Part shown: piece by piece, positions 8,949 to 64,000 of the stretch | Numbering within the stretch: position 1 is the stretch's first letter | How the letters are laid out: the number at the start of each line of letters is the position of its first letter | Source: Octopus bimaculoides | Taxonomy: Eukaryota | NCBI RefSeq assembly: GCF_001194135.2 | Contig: NC_068988.1 | Coordinates: 73,705,027-73,769,026, forward strand | Direction of reading: 5' to 3' | DNA: 64,000 nt | Translations under genes and position numbers: made by a program | The notes under the pieces: generated by a model | What the model saw: only the letters and a program-made list of their open reading frames with translations | Told to the model about the DNA's origin: nothing | The model's database searches: none

Positions 8949-9000
8949 TCAGTCAGTATTAATCAGTTCTTTCTTCTTCGATGACTGGCCTGAAAGGTAG
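8949..9000 (-). CDS. MPC1: Mitochondrial pyruvate carrier 1, last coding exon (C-TAC...GAC-TGA: (F)YLSGQSSKKKELINTD*)
   Basis: Acceptor atttgtttttatttttacag| at 9001. Phase 2 completes TT|C from the 133-nt exon. TGA at 8949-8951. Confidence 0.8.
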
Positions 9001-18619: not shown

Positions 18620-20478
18620 TCTTAATATATAAAGCTGAAGTTGTGTGTCTATGTGAAGCCTTTTTAAAAGTTTATAGAAATCTACATTTTCCACTTTTTC
18701 GTAAAATTTTTTACATCAATGGAATTTTCTCGATGTGAACTTTCCAGTGCAGTAATTAGATTTTTTAAATTCCGTTTACTTTGTGTGATTTAAGGGAGAT
18801 TTAGCTGTTGTTTCTAGCAACTTTTATATTTCTTCCCTTCTACCTGGAACAGCATTCTTACACACGCGCTCAACTGAGAGAGAAAGTGATACATACAACG
18901 TCATAGATTAAACTTTCTTCTCAGTATTCTTTACCTATTTTTCATAACATTGATACGGAANNNNNNNNNNNNNNNNNNNNNNNNNNNNNNNNNNNNNNNN
19001 NNNNNNNNNNNNNNNNNNNNNNNNNNNNNNNNNNNNNNNNNNNNNNNNNNNNNNNNNNNNNNNNNNNNNNNNNNNNNNNNNNNNNNNNNNNNNNNNNNNN
19101 NNNNNNNNNNNNNNNNNNNNNNNNNNNNNNNNNNNNNNNNNNNNNNNNNNNNNNNNNNNNNNNNNNNNNNNNNNNNNNNNNNNNNNNNNNNNNNNNNNNN
19201 NNNNNNNNNNNNNNNNNNNNNNNNNNNNNNNNNNNNNNNNNNNNNNNNNNNNGGTGGGGGACAATTTTCGGAAATTCCACTTAAATTCTTCTTAACTTCC
19301 AGGAAAATGAATATTTTTTCGTGAAATTTTCTACAAATATACCTTGATATATGTACATTTCGAGCATGTAGGAAATTTGAAGGAAACAACTGCAGGTTAT
19401 TTTTGAGAAGTGTTCCCCACTCGGTGGTGTTTTGGAGCAAGTCGTCCATATTTGTTTCATTTTTCTCTATTATGCGCGTATGTGCATCTGTAGATTTCTA
19501 ATGAAGTAATAGGCGGTGAAGAGAAGCCGTCATAAGAAAAATTTTAACTACCTCTATTCCTTTCTCCCCCTCTCTCTACCTCTTCCTTTCTCGCTCTCTC
19601 AAACACATACACGTGCAAGTACACAATCATTCAGTAAAATAGAACTTATGTTCATCAATGTTTTGTAAATATACCACGATTTTCACTAGGGTGTTAGGGT
19701 TGGGGTTAGGGTCTAGGGTTAGGATTAGTGTTACGGTTACGGTTTAAGGGTCAGGGTTAGGGTTTAGGGTTTAGGATCAATGTTACGTTTCCGGTTTTAG
19801 GGTCAGGGTTAGGGTTTTAGGTTAATGTTAGGGTTAGTATTAGGATTAGGTTTAGGATTAGGGCTGGGTAATTGTGCGGGTGTTAATCTGAAAAATTACA
19901 GATATGTGAAAAGTACCGACCCTGCTACCTATTATGACTTTTGTTGTTCTGTTTAATATATACATAGATTATGCCTCCAAAGAAGAGAGTTTGCTGGGGA
20001 AAGAAAGCAACCGGTTTAAAATGACAGCAACAGACTGCAGCAATTCACCACATTCCAGAAACTACTTCGAACATAATGCAAAATGGTGCATCAACATCTT
20101 CTGCCCAATCTGATAGAATTCTGGCAAAACTGTGTAGCAACAGATCGCCAGCAATTGCTTCATCACAAATTGCCGTCCTAGCTCCTGCGAAAAGGGATTA
20201 CCCTGCTATGTATAATCAGGGCAGCGCAAAAAGTTGTTTTGCACAAGCATTTCTATAGCCAATTAGATGGATGAAATTTACGTATGCTTAATAATGTTAC
20301 GCAAAACAGCCTTCGGACCTTCCCTATTAATTTCATCGTCTTCTGAATTATGAACATATTTACATCATAAGGGTTTTTTCTTTGTAAGGCTTTCTTTTTT
20401 AGCTGATTTTCACCTAGCAAGACTTATCGTAGATGGCGTAATAAGTCACACCCGAACAAGGTCGGGTTATACTGCTAG
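18620..20478 (+). mobile_element. Non-autonomous Helitron nested in the left MULE TIR
   Basis: Starts a|tcttaatatataaagctgaag and ends cccgaacaaggtcggg (hairpin) ttatactgCTAG|t. Removing it restores the TIR (caaccaa|taaggg...ataatttcttaactcatttaaaatttctttattca) to match the right TIR. Confidence 0.85.
19687..19864 (+). repeat. Degenerate telomere-like (TTAGGG)n array
   Basis: ttagggttggggttagggtctagggttaggatt...gggtcagggttagggtttagggtttagg. Confidence 0.8.
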
Positions 20479-37298: not shown

Positions 37299-37379
37299 CA
37301 GTTGTCATCTTCCCACTGATGAAATCTGGATCTTTTTTAATGTCTGCTATGGCAGCCAGTGGAAGGCCCCAGTTGGCAA
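37299..37379 (-). CDS. MPC1: Mitochondrial pyruvate carrier 1, 81-nt exon: (V)[26 protein letters not shown]
   Basis: tcttattttattgttccag| acceptor and G|gtaagg donor; phase 1 at both ends joins GTT(V) and GCT(A). Matches MPC1 ANWGLPxAAIxDxKKxPxxISGxMT. Confidence 0.97.
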
Positions 37380-40104
37380 CTGGAACAATAAAATAAGATA
37401 TAATAACAATGTTATGATACAGCATAAAATTGGCAATGGACATCATCATCATCATCATTTTGAATGAGTTTTTCCATGTTGGCATGGGATGGACAAGCTT
37501 CTCCAGTACAGTATCTTGCTATTTGTTATATGGTCATTTGTCATCATCTATTTGTAGAATCCAATTATCCAACATCATAGGCCAAGAAAGAAGTTTCTAT
37601 GTGGTTGCTTGACCTGCTAAAATTAGCTTCCAAATATCCCACAAATTACACCCTCCTGTCTTAAAAAAAGGGACACAGTGGATAACAGAATCCTGGACTT
37701 ACAAAAGAGATGGGATGATCATATCTGGAAACCCTTTCATCATTGATCAAGAGCAGCCTGGAGGTTACCTTCACTTGGATTGTTTAGCACATCTTTACTC
37801 AGCCTCAGACATACTATATATCTGTACAGCACAGTCACCGAACTTGTATGTTGTTTCATCTACTACCGAAATTTTGTTTTTTATTATAGCTCATCTGTGA
37901 ACCGTCATTCTTGCATGTAAATGTTATACATCCACCAGAGCATACCTGCTTCATTTTTCCTTTCCAGCAAGCACACATTTTTCTCATTGAGTGCCCATGT
38001 TTCTACACATGGGCATCATACAACCTGCCCTGCACTTAGAGAAAGAAACCCTTTATTTCTTTCAGAATAGTCACCTGAACTTTTTCAACCCTACAACACC
38101 CATTGCAGCCTAATAAAGTCACCTAGGAATTAGAAGCTCTTGATAGTATTCAGTGATCTTCCTGGACAGTTTAAAAAATTCAGTTAACGAGTGCTCTTAC
38201 TACTACTAACTATTTTTGAGCACTCGTTACACAAACCTTCTTCACAGTATTAGTTTTTATTCAGTTACTGCTGTCCTAGATGGATGACCTTCACTACTAC
38301 TTGTCTCCTCTGTGATTAAGGCAGAACCTTTTGTTTTTTACACTGCTCAGTTTGTTCAGAGTACTCAACTTCCTAGATGGATTGCCTTCAATACAGCTTG
38401 GTAGTCACATCTTTCCATGATGGAGAGAGTAGATTTAGAGAGTTCTTAGTTTCTAAGAGGATGTAAAGGAAATGAGCAAAAACTGTTTCCATTATGAGAG
38501 AAGAGAGACTTGTAATGGTAGTCAGAAAATAACAGAGTCTCATTTCCCAGTTAGCTGGGAATTGAGGCTGTCGTCAATGATAGTGGGAGAATGTCTTTTT
38601 TTTCATTTGGACATTTGTTTTAAGAGATAAAGTCTTGTCAGATTCTAGCAAAATTGTTCAAGAATATTTCATGAACAAAATTGATTGATATTAATTCTGC
38701 AAACAGTAAATCTAGAATTTTTCTGAGTGAAAGTTCTAAATAAAAACAATAAATGTAAATATTGTTCACTTAGTTAATCTTTTCCCATCCATTTCTTGCA
38801 GTACTATAACATCTGATCTACACTTTACATCACTCAGTCATTCATCAATGACAGAAAGATGTTTTTCTTCATTTGGACACTCCTTTCATCAATGTTAAAG
38901 GTTTTTTTGGAAGCTAATGAAAATGTTCAAGAATATTAAACTTATATCCCATACTAAATCAACTCCAGTCTTCAAAGATTTTTTTGTGGCCAATATCTAT
39001 ACAATATCACCATCTTTATGCACACTTCATGCAGTTTGTCTTTTCACATGGTGAGAGAAGTTTCTTTTTAATTTTTAAGAAAAGTAATAGATCTTTGAAT
39101 GCTTCAACACACTTAGCAGATAGTTTCTGTTATTTAAATGATCTAAGAAAATATCTAAATAACAGAAACAATCTTAATACATTTAGTGAGCTTTCTAAGC
39201 AGTTCATGTACTTCATTTTATGGGTGATTCATGCCCCAAAGTCTGCTTAACATGGTTTCTACAGTTGAATGTTCTTCCTAATGCCAACCACTTCACAGTT
39301 TCTTTCATTGTGCTGCTTTTGTGGAACTAGTATTAATGATGTTACCATGAAGCTTGCAACACTAAAATTCTCTTTGACTAAATGGGGCTACAGTAGAGAA
39401 AGAGATAAGAAATACAGGTGCATAAGAAATTCAGGTATGAGTGTATGGGAAGAGTGAGATATGACTGGAGATAGGGAATGGGTGTGAGATGAATATAATG
39501 AAGGACAGTGTTGAGGGATGATAAGTAGAGATGATAAGAAAGAGTAGGTGGAAAAAAGAAACTGGGTAGGGTTGAGGGGTAGACATAGAGACTGGTGGAT
39601 AAGGAGTGAGAAGTGACCTTTGATACATGAGTTTGGGGAGATAGGGGAGAGTAAGAAATTAAATAATGCAGAAAGGAGAATAATAATAACTATTAAAGTC
39701 AGGGAGAGGATGAGAGAAAGAGTGGAAGAGATGACATATTCAGTAGGCTGCAAAGTGAGTGGGTGGAGAAGCAGGCATACTACATGAGAAGAGTGAAAAA
39801 TGTATAGTAGTGAAGAAGGAAAGACAATTTCATGGCTGAGGAGTATGATCAATATAAAATGTGGGTAGAAAGACAGTAATAAGAATAAAGGCTGGATATC
39901 AAGTGAAACTGTTCTGGTAGTGACCTTATGAAGTATGCAGTTCTGCTCACATTTAATAACAGCAACACAACACTGCAGGTTAAGAGATGATGGTTAGTAG
40001 GAGTGACATGAGGAGGAAATGGGGTGAGAGGAAATTGTGTGTTTGTGTGTGTGTGTGTGTACACACACACACACACATTGTGCTTCCAGAATCTCAGTTT
40101 CACT

Positions 40105-45957: not shown

Positions 45958-45973
45958 CTGGTCCCCAAAAGTG
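45958..45973 (-). CDS. MPC1: Mitochondrial pyruvate carrier 1, 16-nt micro-exon CACTTTTGGGGACCAG (HFWGP+G)
   Basis: tttttttttcttttgtag|CACTTTTGGGGACCAG|gtaagt supplies exactly the invariant HFWGP missing from the 81-nt exon, in the correct phase. Confidence 0.95.
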
Positions 45974-47569
45974 CTACAAAAGAAAAAAAAATTCCTGAAT
46001 ATATATTAAAATGATTTTAAGTGGTAGAAACAATTCAAAACTTCTTGAGAAACTGATAGTCAAAGATGATGACTACTTAAATATGAAATAATTAATAGGA
46101 GTCTAATAAAAGCATTTTATACATGTATGGATAGCACAAATAATCATATTTATAAATTAAAAAATAAAAATAAAGATATTTTGAATATATGTTATATCAA
46201 AACAGTCTTTGAAAACGTTCTAAGAAATTTTCTAAGCATACTGAAGAAAAGAAAAAGCAATATCTATAAGATAGCAAGGAATGTTCAATTTCTTGCTATC
46301 TTATAGATATTGCTTTTTCTTTCACTAAACTTATAAATAACAATGAATATCATCAGTTTAGTAGACACAAATTATGAAGCTACATGCTGCCATTGAACAA
46401 ACTATTCAAAAAGATGAGTAACTGGATTATTATATCCCCACAGAAAACAAAACAATAAAGTTGAGAAAATGATATAACACAACTCTTTATTCAGCCACCT
46501 CCCTGACACTTTTTCACCTGACATGTATCATGCTATTTTTTTGACAACTTCTCTCCCACATTTTAATTCCTCTCACATCATATATCTCCTATACTACTCA
46601 TACCATTGCACACTAGTTGTCTTCTCTCCTTTTGTCTCCCTGCATCTACCCCTCAATATCATCCCACATTTTTTTATAATTTGTAATTTTGCAACTTGAG
46701 ATATTTATATCTTGTCTCTCTCCAAAGGGGCATCTGAAACATTAGACTTCACATCATGAAATATATCCAACTGTTTGAATTATTTGTATTAACTTTTTGC
46801 CAACACAGAACAGTCAGGACATTTGTCTCTCAGTTACGTATATGCAATGAACTTTATTTGACTGTTTTATTATTTCACTAATTTTTCTTTAGCCAACCTT
46901 TGCTATTGATTACAAGGATAATCCAATATAAAGTCACAAACCTTTAAACTGTAAGGTCTTCCCTTCATTCTCATCACTTTCCCTCCTCCTTTACTCACTC
47001 TGTCCCTTTCCTTTCTTTTTCTTTCTTTCTCACCCCTCCCTAATTCTTCAATCCCTCTGCTCCCTACTTCTCTCCTCTCCTTCCATGTGACCAGTGTTCT
47101 GCCAAGCTTGACGTTTCCTTCTTGATTCAACTACCATCCGTATAAGATTCTTTCCCATGACTTATATCTCTTATTTTCCTACCGTAAGGCTTCACTTCTA
47201 CACACACTGGTTTAATTTAATTCATCCTTAGTCGAAAGACACCTGTTGTTAATGTCCTGTTGTTTGCATTTGTAATTGTGTACTATTTTTCCATTTTTTT
47301 CGTCCTTGTTTTCGTATACATTTGCTTGCTTTCTTCCAAATAATCTAGTGTTCTTAACTTAGATTTTCTTAGGGCTGGCCAGACTGGAGCAGTCTCAAGT
47401 GTAACTGGCCAAAACTGCAACAACGATCTGGAACACGACTGATGACAGAAAGCTCCAAATGACCTGTCCTTGTCTTTTCCTGTCTTTTTTTGTATCGCCT
47501 AACTGCCCAGATGTTTTGTTGTCGCCTGTTACATCCTTGTTCCATTTTTTGATTTGTTTATATATAATA

Positions 47570-48443
47570 TAGGGGGCAGTGAATAAACTGTCATCTAAAT
47601 TACGCAAAAATGAAAATAACACTGACATCTCATTTTAAGAGATATATTGACCAAAATTACATAAAAATATCTTGAAATACTAAAGAGTAAATTGACTCAA
47701 TAAAATCACCATTGGCTTCAACCATGGCCTCCACACGACTTCAGAATCTCCTGCAACTCTTCTGGATGGTCTCCTTGTTTAAGTTGGTGAATGCTGCCAT
47801 AATCCTTGCTTTCAGTTCATCCTTGGTGTCACAAGAAGTTTTGTTGGTCTCTCACCCAACTGTGCCCCACACATAATAATCAAGGGGGTTGCAGTCTGGG
47901 GAGTTAGGTGGCCAGATGTTAGGGGTGCTGTGGTTAAAGAAATTGTATGGCAGCCATGACTGGGTTCTCCTGCTTGTGTGGCATGGTGCAGAGTTTTGTT
48001 GTCAGACATAGGGTCTTTCAGCATCCACCCTCTTGACCCAGAGCAGCACTACCTCCACCAGGCACTGGATGTAGGCCTCTGTGTTGTGTCTAAATCCATG
48101 TGGGGAGATGAATGAAGGCATAACGTCGCCATCACTAGTGATCACTCCAAACACCATGATGTTGACTGGATGCTTGATTTTTATCACTTTCAGATTGCAC
48201 TGTCCTCAGATTGACACCAGAACACTCTGAAATGTTCATATTGGAGCTTCCAGCATCAATGCCCAGAGTACAGCATGTCATTTCCAAATTTCTAGCAGAG
48301 TGAAATGCATCATAGTGGTGTTTTCCTCACAGACGTTGCCCAACTGACCCTACTAAACTGTGTAGTTGACAAAATCAAAAACAAACAATGCGCAGGCACA
48401 AAATTAAAAATATACAATGGCAAATAATTTACTCACTGCACCC

Positions 48444-48445
<2 letters not shown>
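47570..48445 (-). mobile_element. Internally deleted Tc1/mariner-superfamily transposon
   Basis: TIR-like ends agggggcagtgaataaact and aatttactcactgcaccctg. Remnant KHPVNIMVFGVITSDGDVMP, and in another frame WPPNSPDCNPLDYYVWG (47865-47915). Confidence 0.85.
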
Positions 48446-48477
<32 letters not shown>

Positions 48478-48563
48478 AGGATAAGATCATTATTTAAAAT
48501 ACTGATCCTATCAGGTGGCCAGCATGGGAATAAAAACCTCAAAAGGTAATAATTATTATTAAA

Positions 48564-48880
48564 ATTATAATTAAGAGGATCTAGGAGATACCACCATGCT
48601 TGAAATAACAGCCAAAACTTGACTCTAAAACCACATTAAATGATCATACAGCACCAGGAGAGAACACAAAAAGACAAAATAAACTAGTTTCTTAGGCTGT
48701 CCAGACTGGAGCAGTCTCGAACATAACTGGTCGAAACTGCAACAACTGCCCCAAGAAACTAGTTTATATTGTCTTTTTGTCTTCTCTCCTGGTGCTCTAT
48801 GAACATTTAATGTGGTTTTAGAGTCAAGTTTTGGCTGCTGTTTCAAGCATTGTGGTATCTCTTAGATACCCTTAATTATA

Positions 48881-48882
<2 letters not shown>
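48564..48882. repeat. Fold-back element (arms about 133 bp, loop about 52 nt)
   Basis: attataattaag...aaactagtttcttagg mirrored by cccaagaaactagttt...cttaattataat, roughly 90% identical by eye. Confidence 0.9.
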
Positions 48883-48921
<39 letters not shown>

Positions 48922-48923
<2 letters not shown>

Positions 48924-50635
48924 CCAATCCTTTATTTGGTGGCCAATGAGGAAACTAAGGATAGATGAATGGTTAGTGAGAGCTGTACAAGCTATGTACA
49001 GGGATGCTGTCAGTAGGGTGAGGGTTGGCAACGAGTATAGTGAAGAATTCTGGGTAGGAGTAGGGGTCCACCAAGGATCAGTCCTCAGCCCCCTCTTATT
49101 CATCATAGTCCTCCAGACAATAACAGAGGAATTCAAGACAGGATGCCTCTGGGAGCTTCTCTATGTTGATGACCTTGCTCTAAATGCTGAGTCACTATCA
49201 GAACTAGAGGAGAAGTTTCAGGTGTGGAAGCAAGGATTAGAATCGAAGGGCCTTAGAGTCAACCTAGCTAAAACCAAAGTCTTAATAAGTAGGAAAGGCA
49301 GACAAATGACAAATCCCTTCAGGTAGATGGCCCTGCTCGATCTGTAGAAAAGGTGTAGGCAGAAACTCCATAAGATGTACCTATTGTAAGCTATGGACAC
49401 ATAAGAGGTGCAGCAATATCAAAGGAAGGCTAACTGGAAAGATAGTTTTTGTATGTGGCAAATACTCAGGAGCAATAAACACTGAAAATGTGCAGAAAAC
49501 AACTTCTGTCACATGTCAGGGGGAAAAACTAGAAGTAGTTGATAGCTCCCATTACCTGGGTGACCAAGTCAGCAGTGGGGGTGGATGCTCTGAGAGTGTA
49601 GCTGCTAGAATAAGAATAGCCTGGACAAAGTCCAGAGAGTCCCTACCTCTGCTGGTAACAAAGGGCCTCTCACTCAGAGTAAAATGTAGACAGTATGACG
49701 CATGTGTATGAACAGTCATGCTACATGGCAGTGAAACATGGGCCGTGACTGCTAAGGACATGCGTAAGCTTGCAAGGAATGAAGCCAGTGTGCTCCGCTG
49801 GATGAGTAATGTCAGCGTGCATACACAACAGAGTGTAAGCACCCTAAGAAAAAAGTTGGACATAAGAAGCATCAGATGTGGTGTGCAAGAGAGACGACTG
49901 TGCTGGTATAGTCATGTGTTGCATATGGATGAGGACAGCTGTGTGAAAAAGTGTCACACCCAAGCAGTAGAGGAAGGAGTAGATCCAAAAGGACCTAGGA
50001 TGAGGTGGTGAAGCACGACCTTCGAACACTGGGCCTCAAGAAGGTGATAACAAGTGACTGAGACTTTGGAGATATGATGTGCTTGAGAAGACCCAGCAAG
50101 CCAAGTGAGACTGTAACTGTGGCCTATGCCAGTGCAGCATAACCAGCCCATTTAAGAGTACCCTTCAATCATTGAGCAATAAACTGCGCTTGCAAAGACC
50201 TGTTGAGTCAAGTGAAGTCATTGTTGTGGCTGATGCCAGTACCACCTGATTGGCACCCATGCCGGTGGCACATACAAAGTACCAATTTGTGTGTGGTCAT
50301 TGCCAGTGCCACCTGACTGGTCCTGTGCCAGTGGCACATAAAAAGCACCATTCGAGCATGGTCGTTACCAGTCCCACCTGACTGGCTTCCATGCTGGTGG
50401 CACATAAGCACCATTCAAATGTGGTCAATGCCAGTACCACCTGACTGGCCTTCGTGCCAGTGGCATGTAAAAAGCACCACTACACTTTCAGAGTGGTTGG
50501 CGTGAGGAAGGGCATCCAGCTGTAGAAACTTTGCCAGATCAGATTGTAGCCTGGTTCAGCTTTCTGGCTTGCCAGCCCTCAGTCAAAGTATCCAAAGCAT
50601 GGAAAGCAGACATTAAATGACAATGATGATGATGA
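48922..50635 (+). mobile_element. 5'-truncated RTE-clade LINE with complete 3' end and about 60-bp tandem repeats in the 3' UTR
   Basis: ORFs 48850-49326, 49490-49711 and 49718-50011 (GVHQGSVLSPLLF, LLYVDDL); GAT tail at about 50630; follows a (GA)n tract. Confidence 0.95.
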
Positions 50636-50691
50636 AATAGAAAATTTCTATTTGTAAATCTCTCAATGAGAGATATTCAGTAACAATATTC

Positions 50692-50822
50692 TAGGGTAAA
50701 GATTATTTGCCAACATAATGTGTTGTCCTGGTTTAGGACGAATGTTACCGTTATTTAGCCCCAGGAAACATCATCTGGTGACCAGGACTGCCACATTATG
50801 TTGGCAAATAATCTTTACTCTA
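50692..50822. mobile_element. Small MITE with about 40-bp TIRs and TA flanks
   Basis: tagggtaaagattatttgccaacataatgtg..gtcctggt versus accaggactgccacattatgttggcaaataatctttactcta. Confidence 0.8.
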
Positions 50823-50854
50823 TATAACATATATATTACATATGTATTCTTTTA

Positions 50855-51205
50855 CTTGTTTCAGTCATTTGACTGCAGCCATGCTGGAGCACCACCTATA
50901 GTCAAACAAATCGACCCCATGATTCATTTTTTGTAAGCCTAGTACTTATTCTATCTGTCTCTTTTGCCAAACTGCTAAGTTACAGGGATGTAAACACACC
51001 AGCATCGGTTGTCAAGCGATGGTGGGGTCAAACACAGACACACAAATACATACCTATATATATAAATACACACACACACACACATAATGGGCTTCTTTCA
51101 GTTTCCGTCCATCAAATCCACTCACAAGGCTTTGGTTAGCCCAAGGTACCACACAGTGGGATTGAACCCAGAGCCATGTGGTTGGAGAGCAAGCTTCTTA
51201 CCACA
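50855..51205 (-). mobile_element. tRNA-derived SINE, most abundant family here (also 53380-53715 plus, 58868-59235 minus, 60667-61070 plus)
   Basis: Shared head gtggctatgtggtaag...ggttccgagttcattccc, core ccttgtgagtggatttggtagacggaaactgaaagaag, internal microsatellite, and 3' gcagtcaaatgactgaaacaagta. Confidence 0.9.
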
Positions 51206-51214
51206 CAACTTATT

Positions 51215-51436
51215 TATAAGCTTAAAGCTTATAAGCAATCATCAAACACTGACTAAGGTAAATAGTCTAATATTGGGACACATAAGCCATCAATGGAAAA
51301 AAGTCGGGTTTGCCATACACATGGGACTCACACCAACACCTCTATGTATTTGTGGTCAAGGGCTTATATGCCCCAATATTACACAGTTTACCTTACTCAA
51401 TGCACGATGATCGCTTATAAGCTTTAAGCTTATAAA

Positions 51437-51468
<32 letters not shown>

Positions 51469-51750
51469 GTTACAGGAATGTAAAATTCAGCACCATTTAC
51501 CAAATAATCGCAGAAAACACACATGGAAAAGTTGTTTACAAAAAAACAACATTATGAAAATATAGTCCTTAAATCTGACAGAAAAACCCAGGATGTACAT
51601 TAGCGTAATGGTTAGCATGCTTGTCGCGAATACATAGAGGTGTGAGTTCAAGTCCCATGTGTATGGCAAACCCTACTCTTTTCCGTCAAGGGCTTATATA
51701 CCCCAATATTAGACTATTTACCTTAGTCAATACATGGTGATCACTTAAAA
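51215..51750. repeat. tRNA-headed element (51594-51750 plus) with an inverted partial copy and a second 3' copy forming a fold-back at 51215-51437
   Basis: tagcgtaatggttagcatgc (A box) and gagttcaagtccc (B box). 51297-51351 is the reverse complement of 51619-51673. Arms atttataagcttaaagcttataagc / gcttataagctttaagcttataaat. Confidence 0.75.
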
Positions 51751-52214
51751 ATATTATCAATAATATTAATGTGCCAACTTTTTGTTTTTATACATACCTG
51801 TTGTGTGTATCACAGTTACTTCAAAGGAAGAAGTAAGTGGCAAAGTGGGAGAGAGGAAATGAGAGAGAGTGAGAGAGAGTGAGTGGTGACAGCGTTCGTT
51901 GTGTGGTTTTAAACATCAGTATTTTCAGAGTAGAGTGATACATACATCGCAAGAAAAGGAGATACATAGACCAAAAGAAAAGCAGATACATATATCTAAA
52001 GAAAGATAGATACATAGATACATACACACATTGTTAAATTAAAAGCGGGAGAGAGGAGGGACACAGACGAAGTGAGAGAAGTGAGAGACAGTAGACACAT
52101 AGATCGAAAGAAAAGTTGATACATAGATACATAGATTGTTAAATGAAAGACAAATAACTACAGCAAATATTGAATGTCACTTTCACTTTTCATTACCACA
52201 TGAGGATAAAATTA

Positions 52215-52985
52215 ACTCACAAGTGGCTGAGTACTCCACAAACATGCATACTGTTAATGTAGGTCTCAGCCTCACACAGAATATGACAAGGCTGGCCCCT
52301 TTCAATTACAGCTACAACTCATTTTGGCCAGTTGAGTGGACTGGAGCAAGATAAGCCTTCAAGTGGTTGGAAGAAAACAAAAAAAAGATCCTATATAGGG
52401 GCAGGAGAATCTTTCAAGTTGTTAGGGTCACTATGGGTGTTAATCCGGTCCTAACAGTGGCATTTGTGGGTCTCACAGATCTGGAGGCCAGTAAACACTG
52501 ATGTACAGGCTGTTGTTATGAAACTGAGTGTGAGTCGAGGGTAAAATCACTACACAATGGAATAGCAATTATTTCATCTCCGCTTTCACTGCTTATACTA
52601 AACACATGACATTTTTGCCTTACAATATAGAACATTTCCTTTTCTTTCACTCTATTTAAAAAATGGCAGTCTGTTGCTTATGATAATGTCCTGTTTATCT
52701 CATCAATGGAACAGTCTGCTTGTAATATTAACGTGCAAGTGGCTGAGTACTCCACAGACATGCACCACCATAACATAGTTGTGAGGGAGATACAGCCTCA
52801 CACAGAATGTGACAATGCTGGCCCCTTTGAATTACAGCTACAACCATTTTTGAAAGCTGAGTGGACTGCAGCAAGGTGAAGTAGAGTACCTTGCTCAAGA
52901 ATACTATGTGCCACCAGGAATCATACTCATGACTTTACGATCATGAGCCAAGTACCCCTAACCACTGAGCCATGCACCTTCACTC
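52215..52985 (-). mobile_element. Two remnants of a third SINE family (52215-52355 and 52735-52985)
   Basis: Shared caagtggctgagtactccaca.acatgca...cagcctcacacagaat.tgaca..gctggcccct; tRNA-like head reverse complement cctaaccactgagccatgcacc. Confidence 0.7.
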
Positions 52986-53426
52986 TTTTAACTGTAGGAA
53001 AAAGGAGTGAAGCGATAGAGACAGAGAAAGGAAAGCATCAGTCATTTGAAATGACAATTAGACTGAAATATGATCGATCTTTTCTAGCTTCTTTACTTTT
53101 AATAATGAAGAAGAGGGAAAGACATTTAGTAATGACTAGAGGAAAAGTCTTGCAGGTGTTTATGTTTTCATTCTGGGAGGTCTAGAATGATCGAGTGTTA
53201 GTTCTCTTTTCTTTCCCCCATTCCCGGTACTTATTCGCTTTCTTTTATAGTTCTTTATGTCTTTGAGTTGGGGGGAAGGATCATATTGTTTTTTTGGGGC
53301 ATGTTTAACATTTTCCCTACAAACAAGCCCCACTTCCTTCCATTTTTTTTTCATACAAAAACTAATTATAGCTTTGGGCTGACCAAAGCCTTGAGTGGAC
53401 TTGGTAGATGGAAACTGAAAAAACCC

Positions 53427-53494
<68 letters not shown>

Positions 53495-54074
53495 TGTATG
53501 TACGTATGTATTTATGCATATGTGTTTGTGTCAGTATGTCTCCCCACCACCATCGATTGACAACTGATGTTGGTGTGTTTGCATCTCCGTAACTTAGCTC
53601 ATACAATAAGCACCAGGCTTACAGGGAATAAGTCCAGTGGGCGATTTCTTCAACTAAAGGGCGGTGCTCTAGCATGGCCACCATCAAATGACTGAAACAA
53701 GTAAAAGAATAAAAGAATACTAGAAGAACGTTCCATACCACTAAACCAAGAAGGTTTTTTGAATATGTACGATGTATTTTAAGGCTAAATTGTAAGTCTG
53801 TTTTCATTTGCATAGCCAAGATATTTTGGTTGGATTATATAGTTATTGGTTTTACACATCTTTCTATATTCTGTAACTGTCGCAATATAGAAACATTTCC
53901 CATGGCACCAGCACACAATTTACAGATGCTTACATCTTTTGTGTTTTCCATGAAGTTTTCGCAGGTCCAGCTAGTTACTATTATTTACATAAGTGTAAAA
54001 TTCAGCACCATTTACCAAATAATTGCATATATATATATAGTAACTGTCCTTTTAAGTGGTCCTTTTGTTCATTT

Positions 54075-54500
54075 GGCAGACCTGGTGGGGGTGGGGGCAT
54101 AAGCAGAGATGATTGTTGCTGTGCTATTCTGCAAAACTAGTCTAGGCTTAAGTACCCTATCACATACTCTGACTACTTCAATCACTTTATTTACCCATTT
54201 CTCAGCTATAAGTATGTTAACAACTCCTAGCCCATCACTGTTGCCCTCCCAGAAGAGTTTATACATATGCCTTTTACCAATGAGGAACCTGGCTGAAGCT
54301 CCCCTTCCACTGAACTTCTTGGATGCAGCACACAACACATCTCCTTTCAAGCATATCAACAATATCACTAGACCTATCTTTCAATTTGCCTACACTGACA
54401 GTACCAAATCTGAGGGAATGTATGGGGAGGCAGGAGATAACATGGGGAGGAGGAACTGTGGCTATCAGCATCTGAAAAGAAGGTTGTAATGAGCATTTGC
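54075..54500 (-). mobile_element. RTE LINE apurinic-endonuclease domain fragment
   Basis: RFGTVSVGKLKDRSSDIVDMLERR, CCIQEV, KLFWEGN and IISAYAP across frames. Confidence 0.85.
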
Positions 54501-55556
54501 CAACAGACACATCATAGCAGTTGTCCTCACATTTAATCCACCATCATTCATGTTACACTTGCTACCTCCATTGGATGTGTGGGTGCTATATCAGCACTAC
54601 TTACAGCAGTGTTTGTACAGATACCAGTAAATATATATGTTGGTTAACTGATTAATTATTATCACTGCCATTGGTTGTGGATACCATATACTGGCAGTAG
54701 TATAAAGCAGTGTTAATATAAATGCACCGGGAACATCCAATGCCAAGTTCTAATAAACTGCAATAGTGATACATATGTAGGAACTAAATATTTATGCTGG
54801 TGCTTACCTTAATTTTCACTACATAATATACATATATAATTATTCACAAGGAAATTGGAGCAAGCAAGTTATTTTATTACATAAATTTACAATTGTTTCT
54901 TTGACATTTGATCTCAATAGTATTGCAATATTATTATATAATATATGCAACTATAGATTCTTGAGATATCAATATACTGATACAATCGATCATTGACTCT
55001 TATGTTATGTATAAAATCCATTGGTTTCTGTATCTTGAATTATCAACAATTTATATCTATAGCCAGTAGGTGTGTTTATATGATTAAATTTGCATATCAC
55101 AAGAAAAATAAGTAAATAAATAAATCACAATTCAAATAGGATGCAAAAGAGAGGTAAAAAAGAGCAACTCAGTAGATAATAATGTTTTGTCACCAGAAGA
55201 TATATAAATCATTTGACTTGCTAATACTCAGTGTTTTCTTTAATCATTTTCTTTTAAAAAAAGAGAGAGGAAAAGAAAAAAACATCTATTTCATCAGCTA
55301 TTTAGAAACTGTAGACATAGTTCTGTACCATTATCACAATGTGGTGTAGGTGTATGTGTGTGAGAGAGGGAGGCAGCTATCTAAATACATGTTAACACAG
55401 AGGCCAAATGTCAACCCCCACTAAATACAGAAACCACACACCCAGATAAACGACAAAGATAAGTTTATTAATGTATTAAAGGGCATGCCTTACTTACTAA
55501 GGAGAGGAAGAAAAAAGAGGTAAACAGAAATTTTGTTTACTTATTTTAACAAAGTT

Positions 55557-55905
55557 ATCATCATCATTTAACATCTGCTTTCCATGCTGGCATGGGTTAG
55601 ATGGTTTAACTGAAACTGGTAAGCTGTAGGGCTACACCAGGTTCAAATCTCATCTTGTATGGTTTCAACACCAACCACTCCACAAGTGTAATGGGTGCTT
55701 TTTATGTGCCAGTTACGTAACGCCAGCATCAGCCGGCTGACAGGTCTTCTCAAGCATGGTATGTCGCCAAAGGTCTTGGTCACTTAGCATTGCCTCCATG
55801 AGGCCCAATGTTCGAAAGGTGCTTTTTACGTGCCAGTTATGTGACACCAGCATCAGCCACGACTATGATTTCACTTGGCTTCACAAGTCTTCTCAAGTCA
55901 AGTAC
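55557..55905 (-). mobile_element. RTE LINE 3' end fragment
   Basis: atcatcatcatttaacatctgctttccatgctggcatggg... Confidence 0.8.
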
Positions 55906-56230
55906 AAAATCAGGTTCAAAATAAAGAATGACTTTACTTGTGCATCTAAAAACTTAATTTACATTATAACTTGTTTGGGATGTAAACAGAACTATTTAGG
56001 ACAAATAGGAATGACATTAAGACAAAAAACAACACTGCATAGTGAACAACTTTGCTTCTTAAGATACAAATACTGCTCAGCAAACACATATATAGATGTG
56101 CTAGGAATTTTCAACCTAACTTTAAAATATTCCCTTTATAGCAATGTAGTAGAACAACTTCTGAACAACAGCAGATAAATAAAGAGACTACATTCATAGA
56201 AAAATATCGACTATGCCTAAATATGAACAT
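55905..56230 (+). mobile_element. Penelope-type GIY-YIG endonuclease remnant
   Basis: FTCASKNLIYIITCLGCKQNYLGQIGMTLRQKTTLH. Confidence 0.75.
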
Positions 56231-58096
56231 CAGTTTTATTCAATCAATTCAATCTGATTAATTCTATTTTATTTATATATAACTAATCTACATATAATTA
56301 ATTCACTTTACCTTCACAAAATAGGGGAAATATTGATAATTGAAATTATCAGCCAAGAAAATAGTGTTGCTGTAGGTCAAATTGACCTTGGCAACATGCG
56401 AAACAAGCAACAAGGCACATTTAGCAACATCTGAGCTATGCCATAAGGTACTTACTTAGGACAATCTACTGAAAATAAAAGATCCTTATAAACAAGAGCA
56501 GTCTTTTCTCAATGATCACTAGATTGCAAAATTTTGGCAAACAAAAGAGAAATTAAGAACAAATAAGACTGATTTTCTTTAAAGTAAGTTTGAAATTCTT
56601 CTTAAAAAATTAGGTTGTAAAAACAAAAAGGAGGAGAAGCATTTCTATAGAGTTTCTAAAAATCATAAGGAACTATCACGAAAAACAATAGCGTAGGTTT
56701 TGTTTGTTTGTTTTTTTTAATACCACAAATATATTACAATATATTTAGTCTTTTTGAGGTGGTGTTAGCAGTGAGTTGACTATGCTTTAACTGAAGAGAT
56801 TTAATAGGGTTGAAACATGCCAAGGCTTTTCACTCCGCTACTGCATATCTCAAATTAATTTTGGTCAATTAAAAGTATGAGAGTTCCTTCCCATGTCCCT
56901 TTTGAGAATAGCTTTCGTTAATCCTAATTTGTAACATGTGCTTCCCTATATTTTCATTATAAAGAAAGCAGTCTTGTGAAATTTTCCATTATTAAAGCAT
57001 ATTTAGCTTACTCAATATTTCAACCATACAAATTCAATTAAAAACATTTTATATTTCAAAAATCACAATCCCACAACTATGTCTTTAAAAAGACTGATTC
57101 AGATCTAAGTCATATAATGCTTTGAAAATAAATTTACTTGTTAAATTAGCTGATTTGCTTAATTAATAGTACATCATTACATTTTCTGTACTGTTTTTCT
57201 TCTAATCTTGCAACAATTTTCCTTAACTACATATCTCACTTTAAGTTCTGACTTTTCAATATCTGACCAACTCTTTCTCAAAGTAGCCAGTAACAAATCT
57301 GATTAGTTGTCCTAAGCACCAGTAACCATAATAATATCCTTGTTTTAGTAATAATTCTTCAAGCAAAGTCTCCTACCTGTAATATGAATAACTTTCCTTG
57401 CTTGCTAAATATTATGATGTATACAAACTTCTGTTGCAATAAATGGTGAAATATTAAACTGACTCAAAAATTCTTTGTGAAAACATTCTGAAACTATGCA
57501 TAACTATCAATAATCTAAGTCTTTGATGAAAAAAAAGCTCAGAGAAAATTTCTAATAACTTATGAATAATAACAAGTATGTTTATAATTTTCAAAATAGG
57601 GCTGCATATCATAAGTTTTCAGATATACCCAAAACATTTATCCTGAAAAATTAAAATTAAATATACAGTGGCAATAGATAACATAATAATTGAGGATGAT
57701 GTTCTAGTACATCACATTTCTTTTATAGTGTTTTACATAGAAATAAAATGACAAGAGTAATGTAGAAGTGTAATATCAATAAATGTTAACACAAACAATA
57801 AAGATATTCCCCAGAATACTGTGTAATAAGTATTTTATAAGATGTTCAAAGAATTAGGTTAATTGATCAAAACAGTGGAAAATACGCACAATACTGAAGA
57901 GTTTTAAATGACAGCATATGAAATCAACTAATCTCCCTCAAAGTACCTCATAAATATCCAAAAATGGTACTGACATGTCAAATCTCCAGACAGTATGCTT
58001 ACAACAAAGAATGGATACTTGTAGCTTGATTACCATTTAAAAAGTATTCAAATCAGGTTAACAGAAATATTTTATTAAAATATTGAAAATACTCAC

Positions 58097-58100
58097 AGTA
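58097..58100 (-). CDS. MPC1: Mitochondrial pyruvate carrier 1, 4-nt micro-exon TACT (completes S/C codon plus Thr)
   Basis: ttattttctttttcatatgatgttgttaaatggtcaacag|TACT|gtgagt gives xx|T-ACT-CAC = (S)TH. As I recall it, human MPC1 has a 4-nt TACG exon at this position (exons 71/4/97/133/25 nt, summing to 109 aa). A 4-nt exon cannot be proven from genomic sequence alone. Confidence 0.8.
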
Positions 58101-58299
58101 CTGTTGACCATTTAACAACATCATATGAAAAAGAAAATAAAGGAAATTATCAAACAAATATTGATAGAATTTAGCATTGTTGAGAAATTTTTAGCAAAGA
58201 ATGGACTCTCTACCAGTGGCATGCAAAGAAGTTGAACCACTCCCATACTACCCACTTCAGAAAAATTCTTAGCATTAAGTGGCAAGAAAAAATTCTTAC

Positions 58300-58319
58300 C
58301 ACAGAAGTACTTCTTTCAT
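58300..58319 (-). CDS. MPC1: Candidate alternative first coding segment of MPC1 (MKEVLLC)
   Basis: agcATGAAAGAAGTACTTCTGTG|gtaag is phase 2, 199 nt upstream of the 4-nt exon, and gives a 101-aa protein. The N-terminus does not resemble canonical KEFRDYLMS. Confidence 0.35.
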
Positions 58320-58811
58320 GCTGAACTGTCCAGCATCGACACAATCTTGGTGCAGTCACATCTGCACAGGACAGGTCGTGTAGTTTGCATGCCAGATCAC
58401 TGGCTCCTAAAGAAACTTTTGAGTCTGATAAATGTTTCTGAGGAGGCTAAAAAATATGCTGCAAAGATGAGTAGCATTCTAGTATTAATTATTCTACTAC
58501 ATTAGAATATAATAATTGTTTCCGTTAAGATGGTTAAGATATATAAATAAATATAACTTCTGTAGTGGAAGATTATAACATAGCACAGAATTTTGTCAGT
58601 GAACAGGTTGCAGTCTCAAAGCGACAAAAATATTTTGGCAAATTAAATTTAAATGTTGAAGTGAATCTAATGGTTTTTGTATGTTTCTTAAATGGCTTAT
58701 TAACACCTTCCGTGCTGCAATTGTATAGTAAAATTGTTTCTTTAATATTGTTTTCAGTACATTACTCATACTGAGTAATTAACATGTGCAACTGTTGGTC
58801 CATAGATCAAC

Positions 58812-58850
<39 letters not shown>

Positions 58851-59654
58851 CACACACACACACACACACAGACTGCGGCCATGCTGGGGCACCACCTTGA
58901 AGGGTTTTAGCCAAACAAATCGACCCCAGGACTTATTTCTTAAGCCTAATACTTATTCTACTGGTCTCTTTTGCTGAACTATTAAGTTACAGGAATGTAA
59001 ACACAGCAACACCAGTTGTCAAGTGGGGGACAAACACACACACAAAGATATACATACATAGACACACACACACACATACAACCGGCATCCTTCAGTTTCC
59101 ATCTACCAAATCCGTTCATAAAGCTTTGATCGGCCCAAGGCTATAGAAGATACTTGCCCAAGGTACCATGCAGTGGCACTGAACCCAGAGCCATGTAGTT
59201 GGGAAGCTAGCTTCTTACCACACAGCTACGCCTGCACCTACATATATTTTGGACAACACCTGAGCACACATATTACAACCTTCATATCTCTCTTTTCTTT
59301 ACTCTACCATCACATCTATGCTCTGATCCTTGTTACTTGTGAATATACCCGGCACTTAACCATCTTTCTCCTGCTCTCTCTGACACTTTTGTTGTTTCCC
59401 ACTCTCTCTCACTCTTCCCTCTGGCTGAGCAGCCACATATCTCCTCTACAGCAGCACACCTATTTCTGCCCTCATTCTTGGTTGCTTTCTCTCTCTCTCT
59501 TGCTGGGTAACCATGTACCTCCTCTATACCAAGACACCTATTTCTGCCAACCTATTTCTCTGTCACCCTCTAACCTTTCATCATCTGACACAAGTTCCCC
59601 TCCTCAAATGCCCCTGCCCTCTCATAATTCCTTTTCTTGTGTGTTACTCAGTGA

Positions 59655-59945
59655 CCCTGCCAGTTCTGGTGCTATGTAAAAAGCATCCAGTCCACACTAT
59701 AAAGTGGTTGGCATGTGGAAAGGCATCCAGCTGTAAAAATCATGCCAAAACTAACCTTGCCTGTGCTAGTGCCACGTAAAAAGCACTGAGTCCACTCTGT
59801 GGAGTAGTTGCTGTTAGGAAGGGCATCCAACCATAAAAATGCTGCCAAAATAGACAGAGTAGCAAAGGGTAGTTTTTCTACCTGTGAAACGTCCTACCCA
59901 TACATGCATGGTAGATGGATGTTAAACAATGATGATGATGATAAT
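59655..59945 (+). mobile_element. RTE LINE 3' end fragment
   Basis: ggaaaggcatccagctgtaaaaatc...ggatgttaaacaatgatgatgatg. Confidence 0.75.
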
Positions 59946-59981
59946 AATATATACACACACACACACGCATATAATATGTAT

Positions 59982-61244
59982 ATTACATGGAAAAATGCGA
60001 GCAAGAGAAATGTTCTTAAGGTTATAAATCTGGAAAAGTACAGGACAAGTTATTACACTTGGAAAAGTTCAGGCAAGTTATTACATCTGGTAAAGTACAA
60101 ACAAGAAAATTTTTACTTAAGATATTGCAGCTAAGGATAAGAATTTCAAATAAAATATTTAGATTTAGAAAATATTAGCCTTTATTAAAACTAAAAATTT
60201 TATTACAATTTATTACTTCTATTTGTTATTACTTGTTACTTCTATTAAAAATTAAAAATAACCTAAATATTTTTTGCACTTTAAAAAAATTCATTATTTT
60301 AATTATTAATTAATAATTAGAAATTTGAAAATAGGTTATAAAAAAATAATAGTAGTACATAATTAGTTAGAAAAATTCAAAAATTAGTTATATATTACAG
60401 TAAAATCTACCTATAACAACAAATTCACCGTAAAGTTTGCTTGAATTTAAGTTATCACCAAGTCTTCACATTTTTAGTCTTGAACAACACCTAGTTTTTA
60501 CATAATGAATTTTCCTACCATATATTTGATTCTACTTTGCATAAAACTTTAGCTATATTGGTACTTCTGGCTCTCATTTTTTAAGTATTCTAGTGTGTCA
60601 ATATTTTAACAAAATGATACCTTTTTTTTAAGTTTCTTTGTAAATTAAAATCAAATAATTTTCAATAGGCGCAGGAGTGGCTATGTGGTAAGTAGCTTGC
60701 TTACCAACCACATGGTTCCGAGTTCATTCCCACTGCGTGGCACCTTGGGCAAGTGTCTTCTACTATAGCCTCGGGCTAACCAATGCCTTGTGAGTGGATT
60801 TGGTAGACGGAAACTGAAAGAAGCCCGTCGTATATATATATATATATATATATATAAATGCATGTTTGTGTGTCTGTGTTTGTTCCCCCACCATTGCTTG
60901 ACAACCGATGATGGTGTGTTTACATCCCTGTAACTTAGCGGTTCTGCAAAAAAGACCGATAGAATAAGTACTAGGCTTACAAAGAATAAGTTCTGGGGTC
61001 GATTTGCTTGACTAAAGACGATGCTCCAGCACGGCCGCAGTCAAATGACTGAAACAAGTATAAGAGTAATATTCAAATTTTATCCTTAGCTGCAATATTT
61101 TAAGTAAAAAAGTTTCTTGTTCTGTACTTTACCAGATGTAATAATTTGTCCCAAACTTTTCCAAGTGTAATAACTTAACCTGTACTTTTTCAGATTTATA
61201 ACCTTAAGAATATCATTTCTCTTGCTTGCATTTTTCCATGTAAT
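59982..61244. repeat. Inverted repeat pair (59982-60151 and 61071-61244) enclosing AT-rich DNA and a SINE
   Basis: attacatggaaaaatgc...tgcagctaaggataa mirrored by ttatccttagctgca...gcatttttccatgtaat. Confidence 0.9.
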
Positions 61245-61383
61245 CCATATTTTTTCCAGGCTATGCTATTATGCTAATTAATAATGTGTCAATTAGCTGT
61301 GTTTTTCCTTACCTCAATGATGCCGGTGACATCTATTAAAAGTCCCCTAGAACTATATTCATAAAAAAAGTATAGAACTATAT

Positions 61384-61939
61384 TGTTACGAACGCCCACA
61401 CGCGAAGCACCTCGACGAAGAGAGAACTCGCGCGCGCGCGAAGGTCGACACTCAGTGAGTCGGGATGTTCGCCACGACTAAGCTCCGGCTGGAGCACGCA
61501 ACGATGACAACAGGCAAAAGGAGGAGGATGAAATAACACGGAGACCATACGTTGGGTAGTGGAACTAACTTTTTCTTCTTTTTAGCAAACAAAACATTAC
61601 ATCATCAATACATGGCATAACATTGCGTAACAATAAATTCAATAGCATATAACAATAGCGCATGCAACATAATCAAAGGTTTACAATCATTACATAAGCA
61701 AGAGTTCGTACATCAAGTCCATTAAAAGTTCTTTTACTTCTTTGTTTTCTTTTCAGTTAAACAACATGTAACAAAGTTCTTTCTTTTTTTCTCTTTTAAG
61801 TTAACATCACAGTTAACAGTTCTTTTAACACATGTAACGACAAGTACATTTTTCTTGGGAGAATATTTACACAAACCTTTACCGTAATAATTTCCTTTCT
61901 TTCAAAACTCTCACTATAATCCACAAGTAGTGACCAACT
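61384..61939. mobile_element. Probable LTR end of a young LTR retrotransposon running into the gap
   Basis: Abrupt CpG-rich sequence starting tgttacgaac (TG.. / ..CA terminus) with a (CG)n run. No second LTR or coding domain is visible. Confidence 0.5.
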
Positions 61940-63059
61940 NNNNNNNNNNNNNNNNNNNNNNNNNNNNNNNNNNNNNNNNNNNNNNNNNNNNNNNNNNNNN
62001 NNNNNNNNNNNNNNNNNNNNNNNNNNNNNNNNNNNNNNNNNNNNNNNNNNNNNNNNNNNNNNNNNNNNNNNNNNNNNNNNNNNNNNNNNNNNNNNNNNNN
62101 NNNNNNNNNNNNNNNNNNNNNNNNNNNNNNNNNNNNNNNNNNNNNNNNNNNNNNNNNNNNNNNNNNNNNNNNNNNNNNNNNNNNNNNNNNNNNNNNNNNN
62201 NNNNNNNNNNNNNNNNNNNNNNNNNNNNNNNNNNNNNNNNNNNNNNNNNNNNNNNNNNNNNNNNNNNNNNNNNNNNNNNNNNNNNNNNNNNNNNNNNNNN
62301 NNNNNNNNNNNNNNNNNNNNNNNNNNNNNNNNNNNNNNNNNNNNNNNNNNNNNNNNNNNNNNNNNNNNNNNNNNNNNNNNNNNNNNNNNNNNNNNNNNNN
62401 NNNNNNNNNNNNNNNNNNNNNNNNNNNNNNNNNNNNNNNNNNNNNNNNNNNNNNNNNNNNNNNNNNNNNNNNNNNNNNNNNNNNNNNNNNNNNNNNNNNN
62501 NNNNNNNNNNNNNNNNNNNNNNNNNNNNNNNNNNNNNNNNNNNNNNNNNNNNNNNNNNNNNNNNNNNNNNNNNNNNNNNNNNNNNNNNNNNNNNNNNNNA
62601 GATTGGTACCATGAAATTCCTCAAACTGAGCTCAATCATTTAAGCTTAATTGAAATTTTTAAATAAAGAAGTTAATTACACTTAACTTTTTTGATACAAA
62701 TTTTTGTTGCATGGGACCAAAACTATGAAATTCTTCACGCTTTCTTCTATCATTGAAGCTAAGATAAATATATTTTGCTTTTAAAATAAAAAAGTTATTT
62801 AGATCTAAACTTGATTGGTGGTATTACTTACTCTCCTATAACGCTGTTACAAATTTTGATGTAAACTTTTTTTCTACTGGACCAAATCTCAATTTTTTTA
62901 ATGCCAAGATGTAGCTACGGACCAGTCCACTTCAAAAATGTTAATGGTTTTCCATTTGGTTAAGAACTGAATTAGCAACAAGCTCTGAAAGATGCTGCAT
63001 GTGACTAAATTGTGGCCTTAAGAATATTATTCAACTATAGTAGTAGTTGAATGATACAT

Positions 63060-63870
63060 CACCATTAAGGAAGATTGAACTAAAGAAAATCAACCAGTTT
63101 ACCTACTTAAGGTGCACTATCTTATCAGATACCAAAATTGACAAGGAGGTTGACAATAAGAGTGGCCAAGGAAAACAGTGAATTTGTTAGACTGTATAAA
63201 AGAGACTGGAACAATAACCATCAGAAGAAAGGGGCCAAGTTCAATGTATACAGAGCCATCATTCTCACTACCCTCTTGTACAGCTTCGAGTTGTGGGAGA
63301 TCTATTGGCACCACATATGACTCCTTAAGCAATTTCAAAGCACTGCTTTCACATCATCCTCAGCATCCACTGGATGGTCCTAGAGTGGGTGAAGATTGCC
63401 AGCATTAAAACAACTCTGCTGAATCCACAGCTACTCTAGGCAGGTGAAATCACTAGAATGGAAGAGGATCAACTTCCCAAGATCATGTTCTATGGCAAAT
63501 TTTCATCTGATCACTGAGATAGATGAGCATCAAAGAAAAGGTACAAGGACTCCAGAAAAAATGCCCTGGCACCTGCCACAATAATCACAACCAGTGGTCT
63601 GTTCTTCCTGCCAACCATAAAGCCTGGCATCTCACTGTCTTCCAAGCAACAGCTTCCTTTGAAAATATCCACAGGACCATCCCTGCAGACAAAAGAAAAA
63701 GGAGGAAAAACAAGGACACTACAACCAATTCTGATCAGCCTATCTTCCAATGCAGCCTTGGCAGTCATGCCTGTGTGTCTAAAATCAGACATGTCAGGCA
63801 TCAGAAATCCTGCAACAGACAGAGGCATCCTCCTCCAACAATCTTTGCTTGCGAAGCAAAGTCGAGAGAA
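63060..63870 (+). mobile_element. Decayed RTE (BovB-like) ORF2 C-terminal fragment
   Basis: NQFTYL, KFNVYRAIILTTLLYSFELW, and C-terminal CSLGSHACVSKIRHVRHQKSC zinc-finger-like motif. Confidence 0.75.
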
Positions 63871-63956
63871 GATATATACATTTTTTTATAGACATGTATA
63901 CATACATAAATATATACATACACACATATACAAACCTATACATATGTATAAATTTA

Positions 63957-64000
<44 letters not shown>

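Follow-up and report, generated by a model that had tools for sequence, protein, structure and literature searches.

The mitochondrial pyruvate carrier gene MPC1 of Octopus bimaculoides is predicted to contain a coding exon of four nucleotides. We assign positions 58100..58097 (TACT) of the analysed window, a stretch of 64,000 nt that carries MPC1 on its minus strand, to a constitutive exon 2 of this gene, orthologous to human MPC1 exon 2 (TACG), with a probability of about 0.9; inclusion of exactly TACT in octopus mRNA is what we infer from the reading frame, the splice sites and the comparison with other lineages. An exon of this type has been described before in human MPC1, and the octopus exon is a further case. 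The depth of conservation of the MPC1 4-nt exon appears to be unreported so far: in the searchable literature, neither such an age nor the conserved acceptor design was described, and only the human study of Koh, Shin and Kim (2023, PMC9929638) was found. If our reading is true, this exon would rank among the shortest and oldest constitutive exons on record, and it would stand for a feature that genome annotation systematically overlooks.

The window is the reverse complement of positions 24896..88895 of a longer locus (L007; GCA_001194135.2, CM046608.1), with 64,000 of 64,000 bases identical. The partial protein encoded in the window matched PF03650 proteins, the nearest being MPC1 of Octopus vulgaris (92% identity), and a tblastn search of the window with human MPC1 also recovered exons of 81 and 133 nt farther downstream. 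Exon 1 was absent from 58101..64000 when this part was searched with seven N-termini; it lies in the longer locus and includes ATGGCCAATG...GACTACTTATGCAG. Joining exon 1 to the five exons of the window gave a coding sequence of 118 residues, all identical to RefSeq XP_014773940.1. The layout is given below in transcript order; here and in what follows, a slash marks an exon border.

L007 9936..10006: exon 1, 14.9 kb past window position 64000, encoding MANVLFQRMLSSLKSKEFKDYLC; 3' end ...TTATGCAG/gtgaga, the last bases being ...TGC AG, two bases into a Ser codon
L007 10007..30795, its 3' part being 58101..64000, minus strand: intron 1, 20,789 nt in total, a length that is an assembly estimate because 4,179 N lie inside
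58101..58164, minus strand: upstream part of a conserved island, with the acceptor caacag, an AG-free spacer and a distal tract
58097..58100, minus strand: exon 2, the 4-nt micro-exon TACT, giving the third base of Ser24 (AG/T) and the whole Thr25 codon (ACT)
58077..58096, minus strand: downstream part of the conserved island, with the donor GTGAGTAT and conserved bases after it
45974..58096, minus strand: intron 2, 12,123 nt
45958..45973, minus strand: exon 3, the 16-nt micro-exon CACTTTTGGGGACCAG, giving His-Phe-Trp-Gly-Pro and the first base of Val
37299..37379, minus strand: exon 4, 81 nt
9862..9994, minus strand: exon 5, 133 nt, where the protein reads up to ...VNHF
8949..9000, minus strand: exon 6, the 49 last coding nt (YLSGQSSKKKELINTD) and the TGA stop

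Two ultra-short exons, of 4 and then 16 nt, are consecutive in this gene. On the minus strand the first reads ...ttcctttattttctttttcatatgatgttgttaaatggtcaacag/TACT/gtgagtattttc, with canonical borders directly abutting the four nucleotides (caacag/TACT/gtgagtat, an AG acceptor and a GT donor), and the junctions of the second are ttttgtag/CACTTTTGGGGACCAG/gtaagt (45973..45958). Exon 1 stops two bases into a codon and so does not itself encode Ser-Thr. When TACT was omitted, the frame shifted and a stop appeared at nt 118-120, within the 81-nt exon and 49 nt later. Moving the donor 4 nt into intron 1 gave AGG TGA, and shifting the acceptor of the 16-nt exon upstream by 4 nt gave AGG TAG. Since the omission and both shifted splice sites give stops, a separate 4-nt exon is required; the 118-residue MPC1 of O. 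bimaculoides needs TACT, and its gene model is thereby fixed. A cephalopod-like transcript assembly (so classed by its N-terminus; Logan SRR7548197) reads TGC AGT ACT CAC TTC TGG, which are the predicted codons. A first-pass annotation of the window had proposed that TACT is a 4-nt micro-exon of MPC1, bordered as CAG/TACT/GTGAGT behind a pyrimidine tract and 12,123 nt upstream of the next exon, that it supplies exactly the nucleotides needed for (S)-T-H-F-W-G-P, and that skipping it would shift the frame. All of this was borne out by the PF03650 matches, the identity with XP_014773940.1, the length of the intron 58096..45974, the exact joined frame and the stop just described.

The right protein is already present in the earlier RefSeq XP_014773940.1 and in the O. 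sinensis model. Current models of O. vulgaris, Argonauta and O. bimaculoides pass straight from exon 1 to the 16-nt exon. Another model of O. bimaculoides, XP_052826133.1 (MSVPFLDIYE-HFWGP...), takes as its first coding exon the segment 57975..57946 (minus strand, ATGTCAGTACCATTTTTGGATATTTATGAG/gtac), which follows the micro-exon at a distance of 122 nt, and the longest product recorded for the locus in GCA_001194135.2 starts with MSVPFLDIYE. As a conserved coding exon this segment was rejected, its ATG being ATC in O. sinensis and the region being unconserved in Argonauta; judged by sequence, it is unlikely to be a true coding exon. The N-terminus of a further O. vulgaris model is intron sequence upstream of the 81-nt exon (37380..37449, minus strand) that starts with an ATG run, and it looks like another pipeline workaround for the two micro-exons. 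We take the current RefSeq forms MSVPFLDIYE..., MQHFWGP... and MHFWGP... for artefacts or unproductive forms, although the models that skip TACT in O. bimaculoides, O. vulgaris and Argonauta could in principle be real skipped transcripts rather than failures of the aligner.

The same region is garbled well beyond octopods. Of 246 representatives from animals and fungi, 52 lacked STHFWGP; ten carried Arg followed by a residue with a T-initial codon, the signature of reading AG/GTxy into the intron, and nine began with the 16-nt exon or immediately ahead of it (MSTHFWGP). In the Patella model, AG/GTAT is read into the intron, which gives Arg-Tyr instead of Ser-Thr. About one in five representative animal and fungal MPC1 entries is wrong at the junction of exon 1 and the 16-nt exon. 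Proteins of Mortierellaceae (P0083, P0091, P0105, P0108, P0110, P0076 and P0067) vary widely in the residues immediately before HFWGP (REIGDS, RYT, RQQH, RT, STVSNTPWKCSLLT, and a start at ME-HFWGP), a variation consistent with gene predictors failing on a fungal 4-nt exon.

It could be argued that TACT is used alternatively and that a substantial fraction of transcripts skips it, ...TTATGCAG being joined directly to CACTTTTGG to yield NMD substrates or an N-truncated protein. The model beginning with MQHFWGP (XP_014773944.1 in O. bimaculoides) occurs in three independent annotations (O. bimaculoides, O. vulgaris and Argonauta) and is exactly the mRNA lacking TACT, read from the ATG inside ...TTATGCAG. 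However, exons of 4 nt are routinely missed by gene predictors and short-read aligners, the errors in the 52 of 246 representatives are of the same class and include species without that ATG, and the truncated product would lose the conserved N-terminal 24 residues. In human and mouse cells, moreover, no skipped MPC1 form was detectable, even when NMD was blocked with cycloheximide (PMC9929638). We consider substantial skipping in octopus very unlikely and read TACT as constitutive.

The age of the exon was assessed by threading MPC1 proteins, annotated or corrected, exactly onto genomic loci; GT/GC-AG introns and any exon length were allowed, and the solutions with the fewest exons were retained. 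The exon lengths, the 4-nt exon and the number of solutions were as follows.

O. sinensis: 71-4-16-81-133-49; TACT; 3 solutions
Argonauta hians: 68-4-16-81-133-46; TACT; unique solution
Patella vulgata (limpet): 71-4-16-81-134; TACT; 1 solution
Tubulanus polymorphus (nemertean): 77-4-97-133-55; TACT; unique solution
Branchiostoma belcheri (amphioxus): 77-4-16-81-133-46; CACG; 2 solutions
Ixodes scapularis (tick): 68-4-16-81-133-22; CACG; unique solution
Mortierella alpina (fungus): 68-4-16-217-67; CACT; unique solution
Rice: 96-55-136-34; no 4-nt exon; 1 solution

The borders are identical in O. sinensis (caacag/TACT/gtgagtat), and the single solution in Argonauta hians, a distant octopod, reads atcatcag/TACT/gtgagtat; in Patella, TACT has the caacag and gtgagtat flanks of octopus. 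The two further 4-nt sites that thread in O. sinensis have weak or GC donors, the alternative site in Branchiostoma has a GC donor, and all of these are without a pyrimidine tract. The Mortierella junctions are ATGAG/gtaggt ... ctcatag/CACT/gtaagt ... aatag/CACTTCTGGGGTCCTG/gtaagt. The 16-nt exon is common to O. sinensis, Argonauta, Patella, Branchiostoma, Ixodes and Mortierella, and the junction between the 16- and 81-nt parts is lost in Tubulanus and human, the human fusion following from the position of primer E3-as of Koh et al. in NWGLPIA. Rice MPC1 has an intron at neither micro-exon position.

The first-pass annotation had pointed to a human exon of 4 nt at the same codon and had taken the micro-exon for an ancient bilaterian one. 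Comparison of intron positions across orthologues gave the same 4-nt exon in molluscs, nemertean, tick and amphioxus, and in human according to published primers; the dating was correct but understated, the exon being present in Mortierella alpina as well. On these gene structures the 4-nt exon appears to predate the bilaterians and to be no younger than the common ancestor of animals and fungi, unless each of the two introns arose twice at the very same position. That the 4-nt and 16-nt exons have both existed since at least that ancestor, with an unusual acceptor design (possibly including a CAUG-containing element) kept throughout, seems to us probable. For intron evolution, this means two adjacent intron positions that are common to animals and a fungus and absent from rice.

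The one intron that rice and animals have in common is a phase-1 intron after Met-Thr-x-Ala (ATGACAxxxG/gt), found at the same position in rice (L011 2864/2982) and in the window (37299/9994) and absent from Mortierella. Because of this distribution it is probably older than the introns of the micro-exon.

Human MPC1 exon 2 is 4 bp long (TACG) and lies between introns of >12 kb and about 3 kb (PMC9929638). We read the human junction from the primer table of that study, where the included form is ...GACTACCTCATGAG/TACG (CTC ATG AG/TACG) and the skipped form ...ATGAG/CACT, so that the human mRNA runs ATGAG/TACG/CACT (PMC9929638). The octopus exon agrees with it in gene, length, the Ser24/Thr25 codons and phase (AG/YACN/CAC, in octopus TGCAG/TACT/CACTTT), in its canonical AG/GT borders and kilobase-long flanking introns, and in a distal pyrimidine tract with a pyrimidine-poor spacer between it and the acceptor. 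The two differ in the last base (TACG in human, TACT in octopus) and in the donor (GTAAGAAA versus GTGAGTAT); the 16-nt and 81-nt parts are fused in human, whereas octopus keeps the 16-nt exon separate; and inclusion has been shown experimentally in human and mouse, whereas the octopus exon is predicted from sequence. A human fragment from -67 to +6 is enough to splice the 4 nt into a foreign transcript, and both the pyrimidine-rich region and the main branch points (-63, -68) are placed at an unusual distance upstream (PMC9929638). The conservation figure in that paper is confined to mammals (PMC9929638).

A block of similar extent stands out in octopods. The introns of O. bimaculoides and O. 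sinensis are 85-90% identical throughout, which makes that pair uninformative on conservation, and Argonauta was taken instead. Within 2.5 kb on either side of the exon, positions -64..+20 form the only collinear block between O. bimaculoides and Argonauta (77% over 92 nt), and the intron outside this block has diverged beyond detection. The block points to selection on the surroundings of the exon. It may be set beside the functional human core at -67..+6, and by analogy the octopus flanks appear to match the "exon island" that is sufficient for inclusion in human minigenes.

Within the block, the octopus acceptor has a 27-nt pyrimidine-poor spacer without AG, preceded by the pyrimidine tract ttcctttattttcttttt at about -45..-28; its pyrimidine fraction is 0.50 at -20..-3 versus 0.80 at -45..-21, and its AG-exclusion zone measures 103 nt. 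The same pattern was seen when the 4-nt exon acceptors of 8 loci were compared with the other MPC1 acceptors at these loci (Mann-Whitney tests, O. sinensis excluded): the pyrimidine fraction was 0.55 versus 0.73 at -20..-3 (p=0.008) and 0.71 versus 0.57 at -45..-21, and the median AG-exclusion zone was 72 versus 30 nt (p=0.001). On the other side of the exon, the donor GTRAGTAT is common to Octopus, Argonauta, Patella, Tubulanus and Branchiostoma. The 5' end of U1 snRNA can pair with such a donor at intronic positions +1 to +8, and pairing through +8 would compensate for an exon end, ACT or ACG, that departs from the consensus. The flanking introns measure 128 and 208 nt in Ixodes, 676 and 85 nt in Tubulanus, 176 and 372 nt in Mortierella, and 20.8 and 12.1 kb in octopus; the design of the exon island appears conserved across the eight lineages examined, over flanking introns of 85 nt to 20.8 kb.

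A short motif was also observed in the upstream flanks. In Argonauta, Patella, Tubulanus, Branchiostoma and Mortierella, and in human according to the published primers, the distal tract is directly followed by CATG at 23-47 nt from the acceptor; at this place octopus has CATATG (window 58124..58129, with an A at -26), and Ixodes has no such motif. The upstream flanks of Tubulanus and Branchiostoma both carry CATGTACAT. By background chance alone, CATG is expected in a 30-nt window with a probability of 0.12. The motif, a possible branch point or protein-binding site, is only a lead because it was chosen after the data had been seen.

A strong acceptor and a strong donor placed side by side, deep inside a very long stretch of intron, resemble recursive splice sites and RS-exons, and the 4-nt exon might be kept mainly as a stepping stone through which a 33-kb intron is removed in two pieces. 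The human island still works with an exon of 0 nt, i.e., as a recursive splice site (PMC9929638), and the octopus introns of 20.8 and 12.1 kb would be in keeping with such a role. Octopus, however, retains four coding bases between AG and GT that the frame requires and that stay in the mRNA, and the MPC1 4-nt exon persists beside introns of about 100 nt. Because it is kept beside introns of 85-372 nt too (Ixodes, Tubulanus and Mortierella), the removal of a long intron is not the main reason for its retention. A stepping stone is, in our judgement, an extremely unlikely account of what is better read as a coding exon.

Protein threading alone cannot separate TACT from every other site in octopus. 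The 32,916 nt that separate exon 1 from exon 3 (4,179 of them N) contain five AG/YACN/GY sites, and threading leaves all five standing because AGC/AGT and ACN are synonymous. A GT donor is present at two of the five, and a GTRAGT donor together with a pyrimidine tract at the TACT site only; in 300 first-order Markov simulations of the interval, YAG/YACN/GTRAGT arose by chance 0.017 times per interval. TACT was chosen because of its splice-site quality and conservation, which argue that it is no chance match. There is next to no chance that TACT is a look-alike and that the Ser/Thr bases come from another 4-nt exon in the 33-kb interval: the candidates (CACA/gtcgtc at 49902..49899 and the GC-donor sites at 54123, 53666 and 66775) give the same protein, and the 54123 site has an O. 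sinensis counterpart (L001 15498), but the donors that remain are weak or GC (gtcgtc, gcaaca, gccctt) and lack a pyrimidine tract, none of the sites lies in the block conserved in Argonauta, where threading returns the TACT site alone, and TACT occurs between the same caacag and gtgagtat flanks in Patella.

How a constitutive exon of this size might be recognized can be outlined as follows. Exon 1 would end two bases into the Ser codon, TACT would complete Ser and encode Thr, and the 16-nt exon would continue with His-Phe-Trp-Gly-Pro. As an exon of 4 nt has no room for exonic enhancers, its recognition signals must sit in the flanking introns. The strong donor GTGAGTAT would pair with U1 through +8, and the pyrimidine tract of the acceptor, presumably with the branch point of intron 1, would be displaced about 28-60 nt upstream. 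The long AG-free zone behind the acceptor would keep the 3' splice-site factors and U1 from sharing the same few nucleotides; on steric grounds, U1 and the 3' factors could not take their usual places on a 4-nt exon, and the 3' signals may have moved upstream in response. By analogy with the human experiments, the mode of recognition would be exon definition. If this is true, the orthologous exons form a natural comparative series on how an exon is defined that is too short for the usual binding of both splice sites. The human exon island has been explored as a tool for splicing modulation, and the eight lineages offer a comparative set for its essential intronic features.

Two other classes of very short exons invite comparison. 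Micro-exons controlled by SRRM3/SRRM4 through the eMIC domain are mostly 3-27 nt long and multiples of three, are alternatively included in neurons, and rely on an enhancer with UGC immediately before the acceptor. The octopus exon resembles them in being very short and dependent on intronic signals near the acceptor; it differs in its length of 4 nt, in the frame being destroyed by skipping and in its housekeeping carrier gene, and no TGC occurs in the 70 nt preceding its acceptor. The first-pass annotation had already pointed to the missing UGC and to a length that is not a multiple of three, and both hold; together they fit constitutive rather than eMIC-type regulation. Constitutive coding micro-exons of 1-15 nt in plants are conserved, often not multiples of three, and pervasively misannotated (Yu et al. 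2022, PMC8831610). They are likewise missed or garbled by annotation and differ in kingdom and genes; that paper makes no mention of MPC (Yu et al. 2022, PMC8831610).

The introns around the micro-exon are, as had been described, very long (20.8 and 12.1 kb) and contain remnants of transposable elements. Fragments of reverse transcriptase (RVT_1) lie at 48850..49326 (plus strand), in intron 2, and at 10326..11003 (plus strand), and a weak gag, zinc-knuckle and aspartyl-protease open reading frame lies in an MPC1 intron at 31262..32203 (plus strand). Collinearity with the O. sinensis intron (5,886 nt) breaks down over about 6 kb of intron 2 (roughly 53877..46864), and a tandem repeat with a unit of 63-66 nt in about 3.5 copies (50233..50465) falls inside this stretch. 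A degenerate interstitial TTAGGG telomere-like array of about 27 copies occupies 19693..19863, in the intron that separates exon 4 from exon 5.

In Tubulanus (L005 1..1704) and Ixodes (L008 1..1535), a CSTF2-like gene with RRM_1, CSTF2_hinge and CSTF_C domains adjoins MPC1 upstream in divergent orientation; its occurrence in both suggests that CSTF2-like and MPC1 form an old head-to-head gene pair.
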